The notes below the pieces were generated by a model. The model made no database searches, was not told the origin of the DNA, and saw only the letters and a program-made list of their open reading frames with translations. A DNA stretch of 64,000 nucleotides, from positions 258,560 to 322,559 of the forward strand of contig JALMLS010000017.1 in NCBI GenBank assembly GCA_038496445.1, in the 5' to 3' direction. The stretch is from Trichosphaerium sp. ATCC 40318. Its lineage: Eukaryota; Protista; Tubulinea. Shown here in pieces: positions 2,393 to 60,149 of this stretch. A program made the position numbers and the translations under genes. Numbering within the stretch: position 1 is the stretch's first letter; each line of letters begins with the position of its first letter.

Positions 2393-5300
2393 ATGGCGCA
2401 GGCCAGCTACAGTGCCGCGTTGGCGGCGTATAAAGGTGGAAGCTACTCTGACGCAATAACGATTCTTGATGAATTGCTTGAAGAGCATCAAGACACTCCA
2501 ATTTGTGCTATACTTCACTGGTACGTAGATTTATAGCGGTAGCGTTAACGTCGTTGTAGTAATCGAGCGCTATGCTACTTTAAGCTTGAGTTCTTTAGGA
2601 AAAGCATAAAAGCTTGTGATTGCGCAATAAAGGTTGATAGTAACTGTTTAGAGGCATATTTGCGACGAGGTAAACGGTTCCATGCACCTTTCTTTAATGT
2701 CACTTATCCGTACAGGTTTCGCTCTGAATAGCATGGGAAAGCGAAAGTTAGCCATCAAAACATTAAATGCTGGCTTATTATGCGTCGGTACGTTAAATCA
2801 ACTCCAACGTGCTCTAACAACAGCGCAGGTAGTTTCGAGCAACACGTGGAACTATCCCGATGCATTAAAGGTACACAATCCTCTTAGTTATTCTTTATCG
2901 TTTATAACGCCACGCAAGCGCTTCAAAATGACGAACCTATCCCTCAACGAGGTATTGAAGCACCTGCCTCTTCATCTATCCCCGAACCGTTCGCTATCGT
3001 TGCTGATGATATGACGCCTTCATACCCTGTGCGTACAGGAACATGCCCCTCAATGGCTTTGTGTGGTATTTTTATTTACAAAAAGATCTAGGATGGAGAA
3101 GAAGTTATCAAGTTCCAAAAGCCAGTGACAAACATCGATTTGAGCAGTCAGGCCTCTAGTGTTGATGCGCTAGCGGCCTCCAAGCAGGTAACTATGCGAC
3201 TGTCTATGTGTTAACTTGGTTATTGTTTTCAAGTATTTTAGATATCCATTTCTTTGATGTTGAACCTTTTTCTTTTGTTTTTGGCTTACTTTGGGTAGGT
3301 TGCTCAACGTCGAATGGTGCAACATGGTGTAGGTACCGTTGCTATTGACGAAAAGATAGGTACAGACGTTTACAAGTACATCAGTACAAGCTAAAACGTA
3401 TTAGCAATGGGGTACCTTCAAGTCAACACCGGTAACTATCAAAACGGCATAAAACTCTTCAATGAACTTCTTGCTGTAAATCCACGCGTTGTGGCTGCCT
3501 ATCTTGGAAGAGGAACAGCTTACGCTCTCTCTGGAGCGTTAGATCACGTGCGCAACCAAGAATGAACACAGTAGCATGTAATTCTTATAGCTTAATTTCT
3601 AGGCGATTCAAGACTTCTCCTTGGCTATTGGCATAGATAAGAAGTGTGTAGATGCTTACAAGAGACGAGGACAGGTTCGTGTTGAAGGAAAATCAGCTAA
3701 GCATCCCTTCACTTGCTTATTGGTTTACTGTTAGGCGAGAGCTGCTCGTGGTTTAACAAATGAAGCTTTGCAAGATTTGACAGAAGCTGCAAAGTATTCA
3801 CGTGATCATGAAGTACTACAACAACGTGGTCTTATTTACTATAGACTCGTACGTGTCCAGAGACTTCTTTTTGGGTATTTGAGGCCCTTACACTTTCTAT
3901 CTTATAGAAGAACTTCAGACGTGCTATATCTGATTTCGAGGAAGCAACAAAGCTAGACCACTCAAATAAAATGACATGGAACCATCTTGGTCTTTGCTAT
4001 AATGCTGTAGGACAACCAAAGAAGGTGCTCTCTTCCTTAACTTAATATAATTAAGTCTTATACTCTGAAGGCTACTGAGGCTCATCTGAAGGCTATAAGT
4101 CTTGATAGAACATTCAAAGAGGCTTGGACTAATCTTGGACAAGCGTACAAAGATTGGGGTGTTTATAAAAAAGCTTCAGAGAATTTTACAAAAGCAATCG
4201 GTTTGGACCCAGCTTATGCGCATGCATATCACTTGCGTGCACTTGCACGTTTTGGTGTAGGCGATCACTACGGTGCTTTATCTGATTTCAACGCAGCCGC
4301 AAAGATAGATCCTACTCATACCGATTCATTGCACATGCGTGCTGTAATAAAACACGGGCTGGTAGGTTTATTTCAACAAGCCAAAACAGCTTGCTCTGAC
4401 ACGTGGTTTCTAGGGTATGTTCAAGTCAGCACTTGTTGATTATAATGCAGTTGTAACTGCTAAACCTGAGCACTTCGCTTGGTATCAGAGGGAATGTTTA
4501 TTGTTTTGGCATCATAACGCTGATACGCCTATCCGTACTTATAATATGGATCGTAAGTTAAGTCCACCTTTCAAAGAAAATTGGTGTAAGAGAACGCACC
4601 CAAAAGTAATCAGTACGTTGTGACTTTCCGACATTTTATCTTTACTCTACTCTACTAATACGTTGTTACTTTTACAGGTCATACATACACACCTCAGAAG
4701 CCATTTAATAACGGTGTACCTGATATTGTATATAGCAAAAAGGCGAATGATAAGGCTACATTGTTGATAGATTACACAAGGAATATTGGACATAAACTAC
4801 ACTTGAACTGTCCTGGTTACTTATCTAATAAAAGACAACAACGTATGGCTGGACTAGCAGCTATTGAAATAGCGCAAACACTACGACATGTTTGGGGTAC
4901 GCTGCCTCTTTTTTGGCTTCTTTTTTTTTCTGCTTCTTTCAAAGTGTGTTTATTTCCTCTAAAGGTAAAGGTAAGTATAAGAAACAAGCACCGTTTAAAG
5001 TGCCTGCTGGATCTTCAAGTCATAATGCAAGTGAACATGATTTCGAATGGCGTGATCTTTATGATATTTGTGTGAAATGGAGACAGTGTTCAGAGGTAAG
5101 CTTAAAAAAAACCAAACTTATTTTATGCTTGTTTATTGTTGTGCCAATATCTTTTTTTAGCCAAATGATCCTGTGTGGTGGGTTGATTTACTAACAAAAG
5201 AGCAATTCGCGGAAGGATTTGGATCACATACTCCACTAGTTACATGTACGATGACAAGAAAGCTTTTGATATTTGTTGAAATGACCTCTTCTTTTAGCTC

Positions 5301-51721: not shown

Positions 51722-51737
51722 TTCGGTTTTAAATGTT
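51722..51737 (+). repeat. Target-site duplication, left copy
   Basis: TTCGGTTTTAAATGTT, identical to 60074-60089. Confidence 0.9.
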
Positions 51738-54700
51738 TGTTTGTTTGGTTTATTTGACTATGTTTTACTTTAGTCGAGCACATTTCGCGTTACATATATA
51801 GTACAACACAGGCCGCGGCCTGGGAAACGTCCTCTTTACTGTTTTGTTATGTGTATTCGTTGATCATATATTCCTCTCCGTTCCTCCTCGCTCGTTCTTT
51901 TACTCGTTTAAGTTTGATCGCATGATTTGCTTTCCTGTTGGTTATATATTTTTTGTATAATTCTATTTGGTGTATCATATGTGCCATCTCTTTTGCTTTT
52001 CTTCGGAGTAGCCTATTGGTGGATTTGTCTTTGTCCAGTTCTCTAACAAATTGTGTGGATAGGCCAAGAAATGTGTAGTTTGTGGCATAGCCAAAGCAAG
52101 AGTGTGTTAGTTGTTTGTTGTATTCTTCGTTGAGTATTGCCAGTGTGTTTTTGTTGTAGAAAGTTGGGTATTTCATTGAGTTATTACACATACTTTCTAC
52201 AATATCGAAGTGGTGTTTAGTGTACTCTCTTTTGTTGAATCCTAGTATGGCTAGTAACCATAATTCTGGTGATATTTTCCTGTTTGGGTTTCTGTATTTA
52301 ACAAATAAGTTGGTGTGATTAAAAATTCGGTCGTGTAATGGCGTATTGTCTTCATCTTGTTCTTTGGTTAGTGGAGTTAGCACACTTTTGAATCCGTTAC
52401 TTTCTAAGTGTCCAGTGATCGGGATTGCTTTCTCTACACCTTCTAAGATGCCTTTTGTGTTTATAAGGTGCTGTACTACTTGACCTATGACTTCACCCGT
52501 TGAGTAGTAAAACGTGTTTTCTGGGTCACAGTAGTTGAAATGCTTTACATCTTCTATTTCTTTCTCGTCATCCTCTTCTAAGTTACATAGTTCGCATTTG
52601 TCATCGTCGTACATTTCTGTCATGTACTTTTCTATGTAGTTGGATGGTGTTCCTATACCTGTAGCTATTCCGTTAAGTTTTTGGTTCAGGTTAAGATTAT
52701 TTGTTTTAAGACGGAAGATAAAGTCTTGTACTCTCCCATATTCAGCTTCATTCCTTTGGAATATTAAGTTAGATGTGTACATGTCTATACGTTCATATTT
52801 TGCTGGTCCTGTGGACTCCGTGATCCATCTTTTATCCCAAAATGTTTGATTTTCATTCTTGCGAACCTTTTGGTAGTTACCGTATGTAACCATACCATTC
52901 TTGCTGACTATAAATGTGTTATGTCCTTTACCTATCTTGTTAAACAGTGGAATGTCTTCCGAGTCTTCATCTCTACCGTGTTTTGCTAGGGAATCTGCAT
53001 TCTTATTACCTTTGACTAATGCTTTGACTACGTCCTCACCATATTTGTTTCTTAACTTGGTGAAGTGTTCTTTCTTGGTTTCGGTGATTGATATTGTTTC
53101 GAAATCATCTGTGTGTGCTGGTATCCACACTATTTTTACATTGACTAATTCCATTGCTTTGTGAATGCGATATAGTATTGCTTTGTAGGATAATTTTTTT
53201 CTGCCATGTACGCTGGTTTTTCTGTACTGTTTGATTAGGCTTTTTGCTCCTACACAATCTGTACCTAGTAAGGCTTTACATCCTCTAGGAATAGATTTGA
53301 GTGCAGTTTCTATAGCGTATAATTCTGCGAAGATAGGTGTAGTATCAAAAGGCACTACACCACTAATTTTATAGTTTTCACTTAGGAAGACTCCATATCC
53401 TGCTCGGCAATCTATTTCTGCATTGCTGTAACAGCTACCGTCCGTGGCTATAATAAGCCAGTTGTTGGTTTTTGTTATCTCATCCATTTGATCTGTAGTC
53501 CATCTGGTGAACTGTTGTGACCAATTGTTTCTCACGTTAGGAGTGTAGATGATGTTTCGTTCGTTGCAGCTATTTATGTCTGCCCACGTGTCTAAAAAGT
53601 TTTCATATATGTTGTATGAGCGGCTGCCACAACCAATAGGTGGTAAACAGCACTCACCAGGTTCTGAGACTACCTGTGAGTTGAATATTTGAGCATTGTT
53701 AAGCCTGTCCTTTTTGATTGTTACCATTAAGGAGTTGTTTTCATAATTTAGGACATCATAAAGTATTGTGTTGCCGTATCGTTCAAGTTGTAGATCCTTG
53801 ATGCATATTAGATTTTTAGCACCCACTTTGTATCCTCCGTATAGTCTGTGTGCTTTTTGCCCTTTAATTGATTTACATAACTTTCTAGTTAGTTTGAGTA
53901 TGTTTTTTTCCATCTCTGATACTCTATCACACGATATGGCAATAGAGGACATGGTGTATGCAGCTTTTGCTAGTACTAATTGATTTATAGCACGAATGGC
54001 TATACGTGTTGGAACTCTAAATTTTGAAACATTGTCTACCATTTTGTACATACTTGCTTCAAGTTTGTCGCAGTGTGTGCTCCAGTCTAGATTCATGTTG
54101 GTCCATATTCCAAGGTCTTTATAGTTGTCCTTGCTATCTATTTTCTTGACTGGTTTGTCTTTCCATATTAGGTCACCTTGATCTATTATTTGTACGTATT
54201 TATTATACGTGAATCCTGATTTGTTGGTGTTAATGTCTATGTTATAAAAGGTTGCAAATGTTTTGACTATATTGAATAGTGCGATCATGTTTGCTTTATT
54301 ATCAGAGCAGAGTTTGATATCATCAGCGTATGCAAGTACTTCAATGGTGTTGTCGCCAATGACATACCCTTTACCTGATCTTTGTAGTTCTTCTAATAGT
54401 GGGTTGATGAAGATAATAAAAAGGGTAGGGCTAAGGATGTCTCCTTGTTTGACCCCTCTATTAATTTCTATTTTGGTGGTTCCTATTGGTGTGATTATTT
54501 CGGCTGTTTGGCTATCGTATATATTGTCTATGAACGATATAAATTTAGGGTCGATGTTGTAATATTTAAGTGTGTTTAATACTGCCCATTTGTCTACACT
54601 ATCATACGCTTTCCTAAAGTCGATATATGTGACAAACAGTGGTCGGCAGTGTTCTAAGGCATTTTCAATTATGCCGTGATATATTTTGTGGTTCATGTGG

Positions 54701-57700
54701 CAGTTACGTGATTGAGTAAAGCCAAATTGTGCTTCGGATATGATGTTGCGGTTAGTAATGTCTTTTTGAAGTCTCCTGGTTAGGATGGTTGATAAGATTT
54801 TGTAACTGGTGTTGAGTAACGATATAGGACGGTAGTTACTCACATCACGTTTGTCTCCATTTTTGGGTAATAGAATGATATAGGCTTCTTTCCATGCTTG
54901 GGGTATCTGTTTATTTAATATGCAGAAGTTACACATATTGATGATTTCTGTACGTTGTGGTAGGTTTGCTGTGTCTGCTAGTCTTTTGTATATTTCAGGG
55001 CCTACACCTGATGGTCCAGGCGTTTTAAAGTTGTCCATATTTTTAAGAACTTTATCCAGTTCTTTATGTGTAATTGGTTCCATTATGTTAGCACCTTTGG
55101 TATATTTATTGGTTTTGAACGTGCTAGGTATAAGTTCCTTCTTGGATGGCGTAGCTGTGTATATTTTTGACCAGAACTCGCCTACTAGTTGTACCATTTT
55201 TACTTTGTCATATGTTATTACCTCATTGTCATCAATCACGTGTTTGATGCAGTCTGTGAAGTGGTATGTAGTTTCATTGATTTTACGTATTTGGTTGTAA
55301 AATCGTTTTAGGTAGACCCGTTCCAGCTCTAACATGTTAGTGAGCTGCTTGGCTCTAGTTTCGACATCCATGTCATTGTATATTTCTTTTTTCTTTTTAC
55401 CTAATAGGTTGATATAACGTTTGACTTCCCATTCAAGTTTGTCACGGTTGAAACCTTGGTTAACTCCATTATGAGGATTGTTATCTGTAAAGATACCTTT
55501 GAAGTTATTGGTTCTATTTTTGGTTATGTTGCTTGTGACTATAGCTTGTTCATTACATTCTGCATCAGGCACATTATCGTCTATTAACATTCCCTTTAGT
55601 ATTAATGCTGTTTGTTTACTTTTATTTATTTTCTTTATCTTATTAGAGTTCACGTATCTCCCTGCTCCTCTTTCATTTGGGTCTTTTGTAACATCAGTGA
55701 ATTTGGCTACATGATCAAATAGGAGTTTGGTATATTTTCTCCAGGCATAGTCAACGTTGAACCATTTGTTTCTGATCTCTCTAGGATCATCATATATCAT
55801 TGGTTCAGTTGTTTCTTCTACTTGTGGTAGTAGGTCCGTTACACTACCACGTTCGTATTTAAATGTATGTATACAGTCTGTACTTAGTTTCTCAATTTTA
55901 CATTCTTTTGTTTTAAGACGTTTAATGTAAGGGATTTTATTAGTCTTAACGGCATGCTCTTGTACTGACATGTTCGTTTTGACTATGATGGGTCTGTGGT
56001 CTGTATCAATATTATGTTTTGTTATAATCTCGCTTTCTGTTATCACGTTAGATAATTTAGAATTGCTAAGGCAATAATCTATCCGTGATTTAGCTTTGAA
56101 CGGTGAGTTCCAGTCTTCGCTTGGGCACCACGTATATATGGTTCCTTCATTTTGATTACACCATTCATCATTTAGGTTTAGTCTTTCCATGAAGTTGGTC
56201 ATTGTAGAAGTATTAGTTTTCGTATTATCAGATGTTCTATATTTGTCAATCTTTCTGTGTATCATATTGAAATCTCCGATGATACCAAGTTTGGTATTGC
56301 TTGTGATGTTACTGTTGTCTATGTGATTGGCTAAATTACTCATAAATGAACGTTGTTCTGCGTGTTTGTTGGGTCCGTAAACTCCAATTAGCACCATTTT
56401 AGGTTCGTCTGGAAATTCTATTACACATTTTATGGCTTGGTTTTGTACTTCCGTAATGGGGTTTGTAGTGACATATCTACTTATTTCTTTACGTATAAAT
56501 ACCCCAATTCCTCTTCTAGCATATATAGATTTATTGTTTAGTTGATTACAGCGTCTTATTGCTTCTTCTTCACTGACACTTAGGTTTTTCATTATTTCGT
56601 TCATTTTTCTTTTGTTTTTGAAGGCTATAAGTTCTTCATCTGAATATCCGTACAGGTACAGATCGTATTCTTTTATGTTTTTATTATAGATTTTCATGGT
56701 TGACTGTCTACTTTTTTCTCTTAGTCCAGTTTCGGTAATGAAGAGCAAGTGTGGTTTGTATTTGTTAAGGTATGATGATAAATTGTTTATCTTTTTTGTA
56801 ATGCTTTTTTGTATGTTCATAGCCCCAAACTTGAACGTTTTGTGATGTACATCTGTTTCGTTCTGTATATTGGTTGGATTTGTGTTAGTACCTCCTTTGA
56901 TCTTTCTTATCATTATAATAGGTAGCATATTATTATGTGCATAATTGTTGATCGACATTGTGTTGCTAATACGGATAGGTTTATTTAACATTCCACGAAA
57001 ATTAGTTTTTAAGAAGTAGTTATCGGTGTTGTACTGACATGCTTGTGATTGAATAAGCTTTGAGAGGGTTTTAGTGCTTTCTTTAGGATTACATTCCATT
57101 TTGAAAGGCATAACGCCATGACTTTTTATGGTTATTAGAATCGTTGTACACATTTTGTCATAAGGGAGATTTTCATTCCATATGATTGTGGCTTCTGATA
57201 TATAAATAAGGTCGACGATCTTGTTACACGTTTTATTGTAGTAGTATGATGTTACTATAGTAACTCCAATCATGAGTTCAAAGAAGTAAATTAGGTTATT
57301 GACGACAGGATTGGACAATTGTTTATTTGGGTCTATTAATAGTGCGGTATGTGGCGCTATGAACATAAGAAGCAAAGTTATCGTGTTTTGTTTAAAACTT
57401 AACCATTCCGTTTTATTGAACTTTCTTATCCGTCTGACGGTTTTACGTTTAAGTTTACGCTTTATGTGTTTAGGTACGTATATATATTTTGCTTTGTTAG
57501 CAGTTATGAGTATTAATAAGAGGACCCAATATGAGCTTACGCAAATTATTGCTCCATTGTTCCAAGTGAGGTTTAGTGCATACTCGCATGTATACTGGGG
57601 GTTTAGGAGGCGAAGGCGGTTTATTTGAGGGTATTTGGTTTGTGTCGCTAACATGGTTGCTAGAACCAGACACAACATTAGAAACTTGGTGTTAAGTAGA

Positions 57701-60073
57701 TTTGGGCGATTGTTTGTAATTTTACGTATTGTTAATGTAAAAAAGGAAAATTTATTTTTTATTAGGTTCATTACAGCATTTATTAGCAGAAAAGTTACTA
57801 CTACGCGTAGATTTATTTTGCTGGTTCGAAGTAGAAGCTTTCTTTCTCGTTTTCTCTCTGTCCATATATGAATTGGATTTTGTTTCGTTTGGTTCCGTGC
57901 ATCCTTAAAGCATCTTCTCTCGCTAAAGGGTGTGAGCTGTTGGTGTGTTGTTATTTGTGTACCGTCTGGAGTTTTGAAAACTGCGTATACGGCCACTACG
58001 TATTTCTGGGATTGGTTAATTACCGTATTTTTAGTGATACGTTCTACATTGCGTATTTTTAGTCGTTGAAGTGCTCTAGCAAACCTGCTGTTCATGGCAG
58101 TGACGAACATTGTAGAAAGTCCCTCTATTCGTAATGCCATTTTCTTGTTTAGCGTAACTGCGTATTCGCAGCTTTTGTTGTGGTTGTTGAGTGATATGGT
58201 TCCTTGGCTTTCTTTGAAGCGATTACCATTTGGAAACGTGAATTTAACGTTGATTCGTTGCCTGACATCTCTATACGCTGAGCTGTAGATAAGTTCAGAA
58301 AATCTTATTTTGTTTTCTTTTGTTAATTCTTCTACGAATTCGTTACGTTTTAGTGATAGTACCGGGTTGTTATCACATAGTTGAGGCGGTATATTGAATA
58401 CTGTGAGTTGGAATTTATCTTCGCTTAGTATGTCAATAATCATTGGATACGTTGGTGTTATTGTTTTTTCATTTGTGAATGCTCTACATATCATCCATGC
58501 GTCTTCAAGATAATCCGAACATGGAATGAGGTAGCCTTTATGATTGTTTGAGTATATGGCTTCTGCGAATCTGAATGGCAATTCATATTCTGATTCGCCC
58601 TTATTCGCTGTTGCTGTTTGTTCTGCTAGGCGTATTGTTGAGCTCTTATCTGTTTTTACGAATATATATTTTCCTATAGGACTCATAGCAACCTGCTTCG
58701 AGAATTCTTTGTATTTGGTTGGCAGTTTGGAACTTTCGTCATATTTGATGTCTTCGTCTTTGAAAAGGTCATCGAGAATGTAGTATCCGTCTTTGTTTTG
58801 TATTGTTTCCTTTACCACAGGTGCGCGTAAATACGCTGAGAAAGGATTTGTTGTTGGTATTGCCCAAGAATCCAGGCAAGAAATGACTAAACGATTTGCT
58901 AAACGTATACCTTCGTCGTCTAGGTCATGGAAGTGTTGAATTGCAAATTTCGCTTTGCCTATCATTTTTTGAACGTTGAATCGTTGTAGGAGAGCAAGTG
59001 TGGTTGCTTTCTTTTCGAGAAATTTGTAGTTGTCGTTTACTTCATCATCGTCATTTGTCGTTTTACGTTTATCCAGGAAGAACTCAATGAATTGTTGGGT
59101 TTCGATGTTCCATTGTTGTAAGTTGCGTTCGATTATGAAAATCCTCGGAACGTTTGTAAGTATCACATTTGTGTTTATGTATGGTGGTGGTTTGAGTACA
59201 CCAGGGTTAGGCGATATATTGGTACCCAATGTTATTCTAGCAAGTTCTTGAACATCTTTGTACACTTCTTTCGCTTCAGAGAGTGATAGCGCGTTGTAGT
59301 TTTGTAATACCATGGCGTCTTTTATGGATTTGTTAATTGTGTGTGTGAGTAGTCTGAGTGCTCTTATAATAAGCGTCACTGGCGCTATTTGTGAAGGAAA
59401 CTTGTTACGTAAGTAATCTTTTTCCGATTCTTGTATTTCTTCTTTCGTGAAAGAGTCAGTTATTCTGTTCATACTTATTGGCCAGAAGTCTTTTTTTGCT
59501 TTCTTTTGTTGTCGATCGTTATCTGGAGTTTCATCTGATTTTTTACGCTTGGTACCGTTCTTTGGCTTTGCTGGAGAGGGAGAAGGAGAAGAGGAAGGTA
59601 TTGGGGTGCCTGACATGTTTGGGTGTTTTATAAAAATGAAATAGGAGGACGTAATTCGAAGACGACATATTTTCGAATTTGGCGGTATTATTTTAAATAT
59701 ATGAGGAGTTTGTTTAAATACGTTGGCGTTGCAATTACCAACGATTAGTTTATTTAATTTGTGTTTAACCGACACGCGGTATTTGTTTGGGCGAAGTGAA
59801 CGTATGGTTGGTGTTGCAGCTCGTTCCTGCTGCGTATTTACATTTGTTTGTGCAACTGTTGTAACCGATATAGTTTTACTAAAACCACAATTATATCGGC
59901 TATTGTGGGTTGTAATGCCATAATTACCAATGGGAGATATTAATTTTCTTGATGGACGCTTTAATTCGCTTGGTGGTACACAGGCCAACCCGTATACCAA
60001 CCCCAAGCACACTATTAGGTGAATGATCCCGCAAGTATTAGAAGCTGTCACCATCGTAAAACATTTTTTCTCC
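51738..60073 (-). mobile_element. Intact non-LTR retrotransposon (APE-RT-RNase H; L1-like RT), about 8.3 kb
   Basis: Flanked by the 16-bp direct repeat TTCGGTTTTAAATGTT (51722-51737 and 60074-60089). Short (CAAA)n 3' tail. One uninterrupted intronless ORF. Confidence 0.93.
51847..60054 (-). CDS. Retrotransposon polyprotein: ORF1-like region, hydrophobic segments, ubiquitin-like domain (GG), APE endonuclease, reverse transcriptase, RNase H, CCHC finger
   Basis: APE: GAMNI, ITETG, VYGPN, IGDFN, RIDY, TDH. RT: KTPGPSG, YRPISLL, IDFRKAYDSV, GVKQGDILSP, YADD (54319-54330). RNase H: TDGS, AELYAI, TDC, WIPAH, GNKNADSLAK. C-terminal CELC...H...C. First in-frame ATG inside the element is 60054; an alternative is 59616. 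Confidence 0.92.
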   Translation of the reverse strand: MVTASNTCGIIHLIVCLGLVYGLACVPPSELKRPSRKLISPIGNYGITTHNSRYNCGFSKTISVTTVAQTNVNTQQERAATPTIRSLRPNKYRVSVKHKLNKLIVGNCNANVFKQTPHIFKIIPPNSKICRLRITSSYFIFIKHPNMSGTPIPSSSPSPSPAKPKNGTKRKKSDETPDNDRQQKKAKKDFWPISMNRITDSFTKEEIQESEKDYLRNKFPSQIAPVTLIIRALRLLTHTINKSIKDAMVLQNYNALSLSEAKEVYKDVQELARITLGTNISPNPGVLKPPPYINTNVILTNVPRIFIIERNLQQWNIETQQFIEFFLDKRKTTNDDDEVNDNYKFLEKKATTLALLQRFNVQKMIGKAKFAIQHFHDLDDEGIRLANRLVISCLDSWAIPTTNPFSAYLRAPVVKETIQNKDGYYILDDLFKDEDIKYDESSKLPTKYKEFSKQVAMSPIGKYIFVKTDKSSTIRLAEQTATANKGESEYELPFRFAEAIYSNNHKGYLIPCSDYLEDAWMICRAFTNEKTITPTYPMIIDILSEDKFQLTVFNIPPQLCDNNPVLSLKRNEFVEELTKENKIRFSELIYSSAYRDVRQRINVKFTFPNGNRFKESQGTISLNNHNKSCEYAVTLNKKMALRIEGLSTMFVTAMNSRFARALQRLKIRNVERITKNTVINQSQKYVVAVYAVFKTPDGTQITTHQQLTPFSERRCFKDARNQTKQNPIHIWTERKRERKLLLRTSKINLRVVVTFLLINAVMNLIKNKFSFFTLTIRKITNNRPNLLNTKFLMLCLVLATMLATQTKYPQINRLRLLNPQYTCEYALNLTWNNGAIICVSSYWVLLLILITANKAKYIYVPKHIKRKLKRKTVRRIRKFNKTEWLSFKQNTITLLLMFIAPHTALLIDPNKQLSNPVVNNLIYFFELMIGVTIVTSYYYNKTCNKIVDLIYISEATIIWNENLPYDKMCTTILITIKSHGVMPFKMECNPKESTKTLSKLIQSQACQYNTDNYFLKTNFRGMLNKPIRISNTMSINNYAHNNMLPIIMIRKIKGGTNTNPTNIQNETDVHHKTFKFGAMNIQKSITKKINNLSSYLNKYKPHLLFITETGLREKSRQSTMKIYNKNIKEYDLYLYGYSDEELIAFKNKRKMNEIMKNLSVSEEEAIRRCNQLNNKSIYARRGIGVFIRKEISRYVTTNPITEVQNQAIKCVIEFPDEPKMVLIGVYGPNKHAEQRSFMSNLANHIDNSNITSNTKLGIIGDFNMIHRKIDKYRTSDNTKTNTSTMTNFMERLNLNDEWCNQNEGTIYTWCPSEDWNSPFKAKSRIDYCLSNSKLSNVITESEIITKHNIDTDHRPIIVKTNMSVQEHAVKTNKIPYIKRLKTKECKIEKLSTDCIHTFKYERGSVTDLLPQVEETTEPMIYDDPREIRNKWFNVDYAWRKYTKLLFDHVAKFTDVTKDPNERGAGRYVNSNKIKKINKSKQTALILKGMLIDDNVPDAECNEQAIVTSNITKNRTNNFKGIFTDNNPHNGVNQGFNRDKLEWEVKRYINLLGKKKKEIYNDMDVETRAKQLTNMLELERVYLKRFYNQIRKINETTYHFTDCIKHVIDDNEVITYDKVKMVQLVGEFWSKIYTATPSKKELIPSTFKTNKYTKGANIMEPITHKELDKVLKNMDNFKTPGPSGVGPEIYKRLADTANLPQRTEIINMCNFCILNKQIPQAWKEAYIILLPKNGDKRDVSNYRPISLLNTSYKILSTILTRRLQKDITNRNIISEAQFGFTQSRNCHMNHKIYHGIIENALEHCRPLFVTYIDFRKAYDSVDKWAVLNTLKYYNIDPKFISFIDNIYDSQTAEIITPIGTTKIEINRGVKQGDILSPTLFIIFINPLLEELQRSGKGYVIGDNTIEVLAYADDIKLCSDNKANMIALFNIVKTFATFYNIDINTNKSGFTYNKYVQIIDQGDLIWKDKPVKKIDSKDNYKDLGIWTNMNLDWSTHCDKLEASMYKMVDNVSKFRVPTRIAIRAINQLVLAKAAYTMSSIAISCDRVSEMEKNILKLTRKLCKSIKGQKAHRLYGGYKVGAKNLICIKDLQLERYGNTILYDVLNYENNSLMVTIKKDRLNNAQIFNSQVVSEPGECCLPPIGCGSRSYNIYENFLDTWADINSCNERNIIYTPNVRNNWSQQFTRWTTDQMDEITKTNNWLIIATDGSCYSNAEIDCRAGYGVFLSENYKISGVVPFDTTPIFAELYAIETALKSIPRGCKALLGTDCVGAKSLIKQYRKTSVHGRKKLSYKAILYRIHKAMELVNVKIVWIPAHTDDFETISITETKKEHFTKLRNKYGEDVVKALVKGNKNADSLAKHGRDEDSEDIPLFNKIGKGHNTFIVSKNGMVTYGNYQKVRKNENQTFWDKRWITESTGPAKYERIDMYTSNLIFQRNEAEYGRVQDFIFRLKTNNLNLNQKLNGIATGIGTPSNYIEKYMTEMYDDDKCELCNLEEDDEKEIEDVKHFNYCDPENTFYYSTGEVIGQVVQHLINTKGILEGVEKAIPITGHLESNGFKSVLTPLTKEQDEDNTPLHDRIFNHTNLFVKYRNPNRKISPELWLLAILGFNKREYTKHHFDIVESMCNNSMKYPTFYNKNTLAILNEEYNKQLTHSCFGYATNYTFLGLSTQFVRELDKDKSTNRLLRRKAKEMAHMIHQIELYKKYITNRKANHAIKLKRVKERARRNGEEYMINEYT

Positions 60074-60089
60074 TTCGGTTTTAAATGTT
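60074..60089 (+). repeat. Target-site duplication, right copy
   Basis: TTCGGTTTTAAATGTT, identical to 51722-51737. Confidence 0.9.
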
Positions 60090-60149
60090 CAAATAATGGA
60101 AAGTCAAACCAGTTACATTTCTCCACAAAGTATCACCTAACAAATAACC

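Follow-up and report, generated by a model that had tools for sequence, protein, structure and literature searches.

A full-length LINE in the 64,000-nt stretch of Trichosphaerium sp. DNA analysed here (the window) encodes one polyprotein in which a predicted ubiquitin-like (Ubl) domain ending in Gly-Gly stands just ahead of the AP-endonuclease (APE). We propose that Ubl-GG is probably, though by no means certainly, a candidate cleavage signal for host deubiquitinases (DUBs) that would free the APE–reverse transcriptase (RT)–RNase H part of the protein. An interpretation of this kind had been put forward from the nucleotide sequence alone, and overall it is partly supported by our analysis.

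The element lies on the minus strand, to which all coordinates below refer, and positions 51847..60126 of the window form an uninterrupted ORF of 2759 aa (residue n starts at 60126 − 3(n − 1)), most of which belongs to the LINE. It is a young insertion of the APE type, with ORF1- and ORF2-equivalents in one polyprotein. A 16-nt target-site duplication (TSD) bounds it, with the 5′ copy at 60074..60089 (AACATTTAAAACCGAA on the element sense strand) and the matching 3′ copy at 51722..51737. Between the two copies are a 5′ leader (59617..60073) that is in frame and open and contains an in-frame ATG (60054-60052), the polyprotein (51850..59616), which starts at aa 171, the main ATG inside the element, and continues in a single frame with no stop through its last sense codon, aa 2759, and a 3′ UTR (51738..51846) with a short (CAAA)n tail at its end. 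Pfam places the AP-endonuclease (Exo_endo_phos, PF03372) at aa 1110–1359 (56050..56799), the RT (RVT_1, PF00078) at aa 1757–1989 (54160..54858) and RNase H (PF00075) at aa 2224–2383 (52978..53457). The element thus has the features of an APE-type LINE: an AP-endonuclease followed by RT and RNase H in one ORF, a 16-bp TSD, a 3′ simple-repeat tail and no LTRs. Compared with canonical two-ORF APE LINEs with RNase H (I/Tad1-like, by architecture), the order APE–RT–RNase H, the C-terminal Cys/His motif, the TSD and the 3′ simple-repeat tail are alike, whereas here the ORFs are fused, no ORF1 domain is found, and a hydrophobic block and Ubl-GG precede the endonuclease. This fused architecture works in vivo: the copy in the window has a TSD and an intact ORF, and two copies elsewhere in the genome, C30 and C265, which are 100% identical to each other save for a 153-nt indel, both keep the ORF open.

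The 5′ leader is conserved with the C596 family at the nucleotide level (DNA alignment, with hairpin-like conserved blocks), and its identity is near uniform across codon positions (0.58/0.61/0.50). An Rfam search of the element 5′ end returned no match at E ≤ 1, and public reads yielded one matching run, covering a 155-nt piece of the leader only. The genome is intron-rich, 70 Mb in size and about 38% GC; a small-intron scan of the N-terminal half, limited to strong consensus sites, gave no candidate with GT[AG]HGT and a branch site.

Upstream of the Ubl segment, aa 171–995 matched nothing in Pfam, PDB sequences or the ESM atlas and contain no recognisable ORF1 domain (RRM, CCHC); the element being a single ORF, the separate ORF1 with RRM, CCHC or coiled-coil by which LINEs are also recognised is absent. 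Within this part, a conserved core of the ORF1-equivalent (aa 430–745, 57892..58839) is 40–51% identical between families, with codon position 3 conserved least, and had no match in Pfam, PDB sequences, the ESM atlas or a library of 1.84 billion proteins. It is followed by a hydrophobic block (aa 771–959, 57250..57816) with four TM-like segments (Kyte–Doolittle peaks at 771–789, 810–828, 858–876 and 941–959) and codon conservation of the coding type. The C153, C375 and C99 families have a comparable block, whereas C30 and C361 lack one.

The Ubl segment (aa 996–1079, 56890..57141) sits at the exact ORF1/ORF2 fusion junction, and the residues quoted for it in the original prediction, from ILITIKSHGV to MIRKIKGG, are present exactly at 57141..56890. 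Its tail K-I-K-G-G (aa 1075–1079, 56890..56904) is the equivalent of ubiquitin R72-L73-R74-G75-G76, and the proposed scissile bond follows G1079, between 56890 and 56889. A polar, weakly conserved linker (aa 1080–1096, 56839..56889) then begins TNTNPT, with Thr as the P1′ residue. Since the Pfam match to Exo_endo_phos begins at profile position 16, the endonuclease itself starts near aa 1097 (56838), 17 residues after the GG and close to the roughly 18 first estimated. Gly makes up 3.6% of the 2759 aa, and Gly-Gly occurs only twice, at 1078 and 2097.

The tail was expected to be conserved upstream of the endonuclease in related elements, and so it is. All six single-ORF LINE families that we read (6/6) carry [LI]-x-G-G(G) 5–20 aa upstream of the endonuclease; these are families of this genome that share ancestry, so the conservation counts are not independent, and the whole of the evidence on the module is drawn from paralogous families within a single genome. 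The tails read KIKGG in the window and KLRGG, KLVGG, RLRGG, KLKGG and PIIGG in the others, so that [RK]-[LI]-x-G-G is present in five of the six, and the Ubl segments ahead of them are just 21–34% identical to that of the window. In the other families the linker is likewise polar, varies in sequence and length (5–20 aa) and starts with Gly; P1′ is never Pro. Between-family identity of the Ubl segment is 0.51–0.61 at codon position 1, 0.55–0.61 at position 2 and 0.26–0.42 at position 3; conservation of the first two positions above the third indicates that the segment is coding and under purifying selection at the protein level, in this frame. A seventh Ubl-like match (C80:50304-50531, E 1.4e-8) stands outside the six-family counts. 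Judged by these comparisons, the pairing of Ubl and GG at the endonuclease border is more than chance.

At the level of sequence, the link to ubiquitin is weak. The ungapped 31-residue alignment on which the prediction was based is reproduced in full with host ubiquitin (identities I3, K6, E16, P19, I30 and Q31), and hhalign chose the same register unprompted. With the six-family profile, hhalign aligned the segment collinearly with host ubiquitin from K6 to G76, placing GG on GG (P 0.0095, probability 4%); the hhalign probabilities against host ubiquitin were only 2–4% throughout. Pfam gave no match at E ≤ 10 for the Ubl segments of the window and the five other families, a genome-wide scan with the PF00240 profile found 134 places without the Ubl segment among them, host ubiquitin gave no BLASTP alignment with the C99 segment, and a profile search of PDB sequences returned no match. 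We therefore call the domain ubiquitin-like, and not a member of the ubiquitin family, as there is no significant sequence-profile match to PF00240. The domain shares about 12–17% identity with ubiquitin and, in the Ile44 patch, does not conserve the residue corresponding to L8; it is therefore not certain that host DUBs would recognise it.

For aa 990–1080 a beta-grasp had been anticipated, and AlphaFold2 (AF2), run on the six-family alignment without ubiquitin, predicted one (pLDDT 70, pTM 0.54), with topology b-b-a-b-b-(3-10)-b and b1 at 996–1002, b2 at 1005–1012, a1 at 1018–1029, b3 at 1037–1041 and b5 at 1067–1074. One of the five models was good (pLDDT 70, then 56, 50, 49 and 45), and an earlier run, on a wider segment and an alignment of only three close sequences, reached pLDDT 46. 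A Foldseek search with the AF2 model returned 269 PDB matches at E ≤ 1e-3, headed by ubiquitin variants, ISG15 and Hub1 (prob 1.0, TM 0.64–0.80, depending on the target). In an exhaustive structure search of 48,161 chains, ubiquitin-superfold domains made up all of the top 50; ISG15, SUMO and ubiquitin were the best structural matches. VIA superposed model residues 1–90 on residues 76–157 of the ISG15 C-domain (Z 11.0, rmsd 1.9 Å, 79 residues), so that G1079 coincides with G157, the last Gly of the LRLRGG tail of ISG15. The di-glycine lies 3–4 residues past strand b5 in the model, with a ubiquitin-type L-x before it. In the ESM atlas, the nearest named neighbours of both the window and the C99 segments, which are 27% identical to each other, were PF00240/PF11976 clusters (0.91–0.92); the ORF1-like core of the same polyprotein gave no usable match. 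Together, these results suggest with moderate confidence that the Ubl segment adopts the ubiquitin superfold, and on the model the module is an old, highly diverged ubiquitin-fold domain with a tail like those of ubiquitin, NEDD8 and ISG15.

Could a beta-rich linker have been over-interpreted here, with the GG a product of chance or a hinge inherited from a common ancestor? Every sequence test against ubiquitin was non-significant, AF2 confidence was moderate on an alignment of six sequences, and the shared ancestry of the families keeps their counts from being independent. We nonetheless hold this to be improbable: AF2 with Foldseek and VIA, ESM applied to two very different members, and the collinear hhalign alignment agree on fold and register, the segment is under purifying selection, and GG is extremely rare elsewhere in these proteins.

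The same structural comparisons bear on whether a ubiquitin fold at this place needs to be cut at all. On structure alone, the modifiers have no advantage over integral, non-cleaved UBL, UBX and FERM-F1 domains (Z 9–10.5, within 1), and the Ubl segment might be an integral type-2 UBL, like those of Rad23, parkin or the USP DUSP-UBL, with GG(G) as a hinge in a polyprotein that is active uncut. It might then serve in docking or folding, for example through contact with the proteasome or p97, in solubility or in RNP assembly. The lack of PF00240 membership by sequence would suit such a domain, GGG is a frequent linker motif, and a single unprocessed ORF suffices in some LINE clades (PMC3894237). 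What makes this reading unlikely, although with an appreciable chance of being right, is that the whole [RK]-[LI]-x-G-G, and not the glycines alone, is kept across families that are 21–34% identical, that the tail lies at the structurally exact position of a modifier tail, and that the module sits right at the ORF1/ORF2 fusion and is missing in two-ORF relatives. Moreover, integral UBLs as a rule lack a C-terminal di-glycine.

The Ubl module tracks the fused-ORF arrangement. It is present in all six single-ORF families and in none of three two-ORF elements (0/3), namely the C440 family of this genome and the two nearest external relatives, both of which have the order ORF1–stop–ATG–ORF2. The original prediction had envisaged a single polyprotein in place of the usual two ORFs; the 2759-aa ORF agrees with it. 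Searches with APE–RT–RNase H retrieved 13 distant homologous proteins, in which the endonuclease was never preceded by a Ubl (0/13); the best two are the two-ORF elements. Outside this genome, a homologue search with aa 760–1100, an exhaustive HMMER search of 1.84 billion representatives with the N-terminal profile and two metagenome scans for relatives found none. One Rhizophagus clarus match (C30-family query, 25%) with 'INGG' before the endonuclease was rejected, as its upstream frame is closed and holds no Ubl.

Other means of separating the two parts of such a polyprotein are known from related elements. In single-ORF APE-type non-LTR retrotransposons such as L1Tc and Ingi, 2A peptides split the N-terminal part from APE–RT (PMC3894237, PMC3708506). 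The problem and the place are the same as here, the separation of the N-terminal part from APE–RT within one ORF; however, 2A is an 18–30-aa translational recoding signal ending in NPGP, whereas the LINE described here has a predicted folded domain, about 85 aa long, and a proposed post-translational cut by a protease. No 2A motif (D(V/I)ExNPGP upstream of the endonuclease, NPGP or a related form) was found in the six polyproteins. Ulp1-like proteases are carried by non-LTR elements of the NeSL/Utopia type, and OTU-like proteases also occur in Helentrons (PMC4640811, PMC6431247). Common to those elements and ours would be reliance on the ubiquitin-like protease system, presumably to process the polyprotein, but the NeSL/Utopia-type elements are RLE-type and carry the protease, whereas ours is APE-type and carries a substrate-like Ubl-GG with no recognisable protease.

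The precedent of NeSL/Utopia non-LTR retrotransposons with Ulp1-like proteases (PMC4640811) nevertheless raises the question of whether the cut after GG might be made by an unrecognised protease of the element itself, for instance a cryptic cysteine protease in the N-terminal protein, in parallel with viral papain-like LxGG cleavage and with the Ulp1-like and OTU-like proteases of non-LTR elements. About 575 N-terminal residues have no assigned fold and could harbour one, and PF02902 (Ulp1) and PF02338 (OTU) domains were present in RT proteins retrieved by our RT search. However, Pfam searches of the whole polyprotein and, at a threshold as loose as E ≤ 5, of four separate segments detected no protease domain; peptidase C48 and OTU domains likewise had no Pfam match in the whole protein or the four segments. 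C30 and C361 keep Ubl-GG, yet their segments just upstream are unlike that of the window (compared by eye, those segments only). Cleavage by such an enzyme thus seems to us distinctly improbable.

We favour cleavage by host enzymes. The host genome encodes ubiquitin and UCH-family hydrolases, which speaks to the presence of the enzymes only. In ubiquitin fusions, cellular DUBs cut after GG whatever residue comes next, except Pro. Like the linear fusions (polyubiquitin, UBA52/RPS27A and those of the ubiquitin-fusion technique), the polyprotein has in frame a predicted ubiquitin fold ending in [LI]-x-G-G before another protein, and its P1′ residue, Thr or Gly, is of a compatible class (not Pro). 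It differs from them in that the LINE domain is outside PF00240, lies inside the protein, behind about 825 residues, and belongs to a transposon, and in that its cleavage is putative. As we envisage it, host UCH- or USP-type DUBs would recognise the fold together with its LxGG tail and cleave on the C-terminal side of the second Gly, co-translationally or soon after, as with natural linear ubiquitin fusions. The freed APE–RT–RNase H would begin with a small residue, Thr in the window and Gly in the other families, and have a short flexible leader, and the N-terminal protein would retain the Ubl as its own C-terminus. A 1:1 polyprotein would imply an unusual ORF1p:ORF2p ratio, which counts against this scheme, as does the possibility that a Gly-rich interdomain hinge is kept for flexibility alone.

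A functional parallel comes from pestivirus polyproteins: ubiquitin inserted into them marks a processing site, and the cut is made by ubiquitin C-terminal hydrolases of the cell (PMC8310069). Cytopathogenic strains (BVDV Osloss, CP1 and CP Rit) resemble the LINE in having a ubiquitin moiety at a junction before a replication enzyme, there NS3. The pestivirus inserts are recent, nearly identical to host ubiquitin and found in sporadic recombinants, whereas the LINE module is ancient, much diverged and fixed in at least six families.

If host DUBs do cut there, the exposed GG might in turn be used by E1 and E2 enzymes for conjugation of the N-terminal protein to host or element proteins, with the Ubl acting as a modifier. 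All that would point this way is the ubiquitin-type tail and where it lies in the structure, and nothing in our data favours it; the domain is only 12–17% identical to ubiquitin, E1 enzymes are highly specific, and no modifier known to us is extended by roughly 800 residues at its N-terminus. We regard such conjugation as highly improbable. A broader scheme, in which the hydrophobic block would be a membrane tether, the DUB cut a regulated release of the polymerase and the N-terminal protein with its exposed tail a species conjugated to host or element proteins, strikes us as very doubtful; were it true, the transposon would encode a ubiquitin-like modifier with a large cargo.

How LINEs produce ORF2p is a long-standing question, and the known routes are unconventional reinitiation, stop–start overlap and 2A skipping. 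Our literature search found no report of Ubl-based release by host DUBs for LINE-class elements, and reviews describe APE-type LINE proteins as not proteolytically processed (PMC3894237). Should the candidate signal prove to be cut by host DUBs, it would represent another solution to the ORF2p problem, namely expression of a real polyprotein that depends on host deubiquitinases. The activity of the transposon would be tied to the host ubiquitin system, which suggests a new point of host control. The families would also provide a set of extremely diverged natural DUB substrates from which the minimal needs of DUB recognition may be learned, and a trick seen sporadically in pestiviruses would have been long fixed in a family of cellular parasites.

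The ubiquitin-like (Ubl) segment lies within an open frame of 2759 codons on the minus strand (window 51847–60126), in which Pfam recognized Exo_endo_phos (aa 1110–1359), RVT_1 (aa 1757–1989) and RNase_H (aa 2224–2383) domains, all on the minus strand; the first 1100 residues had no Pfam match. A 16-bp target-site duplication (AACATTTAAAACCGAA; 60074–60089 and 51722–51737) bounds the element on both sides, and its end is a short (CAAA)n tail. Together, these features identify a full-length, recently inserted AP-endonuclease (APE)-type LINE, whose main in-element ATG is codon 171 (59616–59614). The Ubl segment (aa 996–1079) corresponds exactly to 57141–56890, reads as originally quoted and ends in KIKGG, and an endonuclease follows soon after the Gly-Gly, the APE domain starting about 17 residues downstream.

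A protein-level search of the assembly for relatives of the whole N-terminal half yielded two other single-ORF families, C153 (identical to C596) and C375, both about 33% identical to the window element over aa 186–1110. Across the three families, identity in the Ubl segment was 0.51–0.61, 0.55–0.61 and 0.26–0.42 at codon positions 1, 2 and 3, respectively. Position 3 is thus the least identical, the mark of protein-level purifying selection in this frame; the ORF1-like core and a hydrophobic block displayed the same pattern. The three tails read KIKGG (window), KLRGGG and KLVGGG, and a well-conserved stretch, PIRIS...Y-A-x-N-N-x-L-x-I, lies just before them. Three more distant single-ORF families of the same genome, with about 30% identity in APE–RT, carried RLRGGG (C30, the same as C265), KLKGGGG (C361) and PIIGGG (C99), 5–13 residues before the endonuclease. 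Gly-Gly just upstream of APE, which the original prediction expected to be kept, was therefore present in 6/6 single-ORF families read. Aligned backward from Gly-Gly, the window's K-I-K-G-G stands opposite R-L-R-G-G of ubiquitin, and the others read KLRGG, KLVGG, RLRGG (C30, identical to ubiquitin), KLKGG and PIIGG. These proteins are Gly-poor: the window's 2759 residues contain two GG sites and the readable frame part of each other family two or three, one of which is the Ubl end in every family read. The residue after GG (P1′) was Thr or Gly and never Pro, and the linker that follows is short, polar and poorly conserved, properties that would be expected of an accessible scissile bond.

Sequence methods do not place the segment as ubiquitin-like. 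Pfam at E≤10 gave no match for the Ubl segment of any family, a whole-genome PF00240 scan did not pick it up, a Ubl profile matched no PDB sequence and BLASTP produced no alignment with host ubiquitin. When hhalign aligned the segment with the host's own ubiquitin, P was only 0.025 for three sequences and 0.0095 for six, although the six-sequence alignment ran collinearly between ubiquitin K6 and G76 and placed GG on GG. It was structure prediction that decided the matter. A first AF2 run on three sequences was poor (pLDDT 46), but a second, using the six-family alignment with tight boundaries and ubiquitin left out, gave a best model with pLDDT 70 and pTM 0.54 and the elements b1, b2, a1, b3, a short b4, a 3-10 turn and b5. 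Foldseek matched this model to 269 PDB entries at E≤1e-3; ubiquitin variants, ISG15 and Hub1 led the list, and NEDD8 and SUMO ranked lower. VIA superposed it on the ISG15 C-domain (Z 11.0, rmsd 1.9 Å, 79 residues), with model residues 1–90 on ISG15 76–157 and therefore G1079 on the terminal Gly of LRLRGG, and of 48,161 representative chains compared exhaustively with it, the top 50 were exclusively ubiquitin-superfold domains. Language-model features lent independent support: the window and C99 segments (27% identical) had PF00240/Rad60-SLD clusters as nearest named neighbours (0.91–0.92), whereas the window protein's ORF1-like core returned nothing usable. The predicted fold thus agrees with the beta-grasp proposed originally, an assignment we consider very probable, although only one of five AF2 models is confident and every homologue comes from one genome. 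That the segment is not a Ubl at all, as the sequence searches taken by themselves might suggest, is highly unlikely given the modelled fold and the language-model neighbours.

FERM-F1, UBX and integral UBL domains score level with ISG15 and SUMO, so structure alone cannot separate a modifier-like from an integral UBL; the discriminating feature is the tail. The tail of these families is of the ubiquitin/NEDD8/ISG15 type, not the SUMO type, and integral UBLs, to our knowledge, as a rule lack one. That the UBL is integral and stays uncut, with Gly residues forming a hinge before the endonuclease, would fit the structural scores equally well but is for this reason unlikely.

We propose that the polyprotein would be translated as a single chain and cut after G1079 by a host UCH- or USP-type deubiquitinase (DUB), freeing APE–RT–RNaseH and leaving the Ubl as the C-terminus of the N-terminal protein. 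Ubiquitin and UCH genes were both found in the host genome. Ubiquitin insertions in pestiviruses provide a precedent, as cellular ubiquitin C-terminal hydrolases cleave them and so free NS3 (PMC8310069). In a review of how non-LTR proteins are made, APE-type elements are described as leaving their two ORF products unprocessed (PMC3894237), and single-ORF clades are known to use 2A peptides (PMC3894237; PMC3708506), a motif absent from the polyproteins here. Cleavage by a cryptic element-encoded protease would be an alternative, but Pfam detected no protease domain anywhere in the polyprotein and we regard it as very improbable. The missing 2A motif and protease domain and the pestivirus precedent together favour Ubl–GG as a probable host-DUB cleavage signal; we infer cleavage, enzyme class and timing. 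Conjugation of the exposed GG, which would add to cleavage and not replace it, seems more improbable still. Ulp1-like proteases are known in NeSL/Utopia elements (PMC4640811), and our RT search of public proteins also picked up RT proteins bearing an Ulp1 or OTU domain; those carry the enzyme, whereas the LINE here carries a substrate-like Ubl–GG. Two RT proteins with Ulp1-like PF02902 (P0005 and P0007) have ubiquitin-tail-like motifs near their N-termini, …GRMRGG… and …PLVGGG…, upstream of zinc fingers and the protease, which could be cleavage sites for their own proteases. In full-text literature searches, no LINE polyprotein turned up for which a ubiquitin-like domain had been reported; the element class and the cellular principle of cleavage are each known, but their combination is therefore one not described before.

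The element's first ~330 nt (59745–60073, minus strand; L041 about 3200–3600) are about 65–70% identical to C596/C153 in nucleotides, much better conserved than the coding region, and contain paired hairpin-like blocks such as GCCGATA...TATATCGGTTA and CAGC...GCTG. In the window and C596/C153 families alike, the leader has no stop after an in-frame ATG (60054), and the predicted N-terminus would resemble a signal peptide. Codon-position identity is almost equal (0.58/0.61/0.50), which favours an RNA or DNA element over a protein; Rfam gave no match at this 5′ end. The sole public run with element sequence contained one 155-nt contig identical to window 59789–59943, within the conserved 5′ leader, and nothing else; it may derive from an abundant RNA that is small or structured, or reflect chance sampling. 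The ORF1-equivalent protein (aa 171–745; 57892–59616) is 40–51% conserved between families, with invariant Cys/His/Asp positions (for example, GYLIPC...DAWM and H...CEY), yet is an orphan, with no match in Pfam, PDB sequences, the ESM atlas or 1.84 billion representative proteins. Between its core and the Ubl, aa 771–959 (57250–57816) contain four TM-like hydrophobic segments under coding-type selection; such a putative multi-pass membrane segment is by itself unusual for a LINE protein. Comparable blocks occur in C153, C375 and C99, whereas C30 and C361 lack them; the block is thus optional, unlike Ubl–GG.

Finally, the window's own copy of the element is the only one at the DNA level in the assembly (70 Mb, 642 contigs), with its frame intact and target-site duplication present. 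The C30 and C265 copies (L042 versus L019/L043) are full-length and Ubl-bearing, with both frames open (2663 and 2612 aa), and are 100% identical over >5.7 kb except where the N-terminal protein has an indel of 153 nt (51 codons), indicating very recent activity or tandem-repeat polymorphism. Intact and near-identical copies show that the fused Ubl architecture is functional in vivo. A six-segment profile found nine places in the genome, each in a long LINE frame; one, on contig C80 (50304–50531, minus strand; E 1.4e-8), lies inside a 676-aa open frame and probably represents one more LINE lineage with a Ubl, the seventh. No search route found relatives carrying the module outside the source genome. 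In public protein data, the two closest relatives, on metagenome contigs (29% and 27% identity), have an ORF1–stop–ATG–ORF2 layout without a Ubl. In these (sample ERZ27269047), the ORF1 stop is directly followed by the ORF2 ATG (L055 3775–3780; L056 579–584), a stop–start arrangement typical of termination–reinitiation, unlike the fused frame here. The module is likewise absent from C440, the sole two-ORF family of the genome read. Thus, with 6/6 single-ORF families and 0/3 two-ORF elements carrying it among those read, the Ubl module goes with the fused-ORF arrangement.
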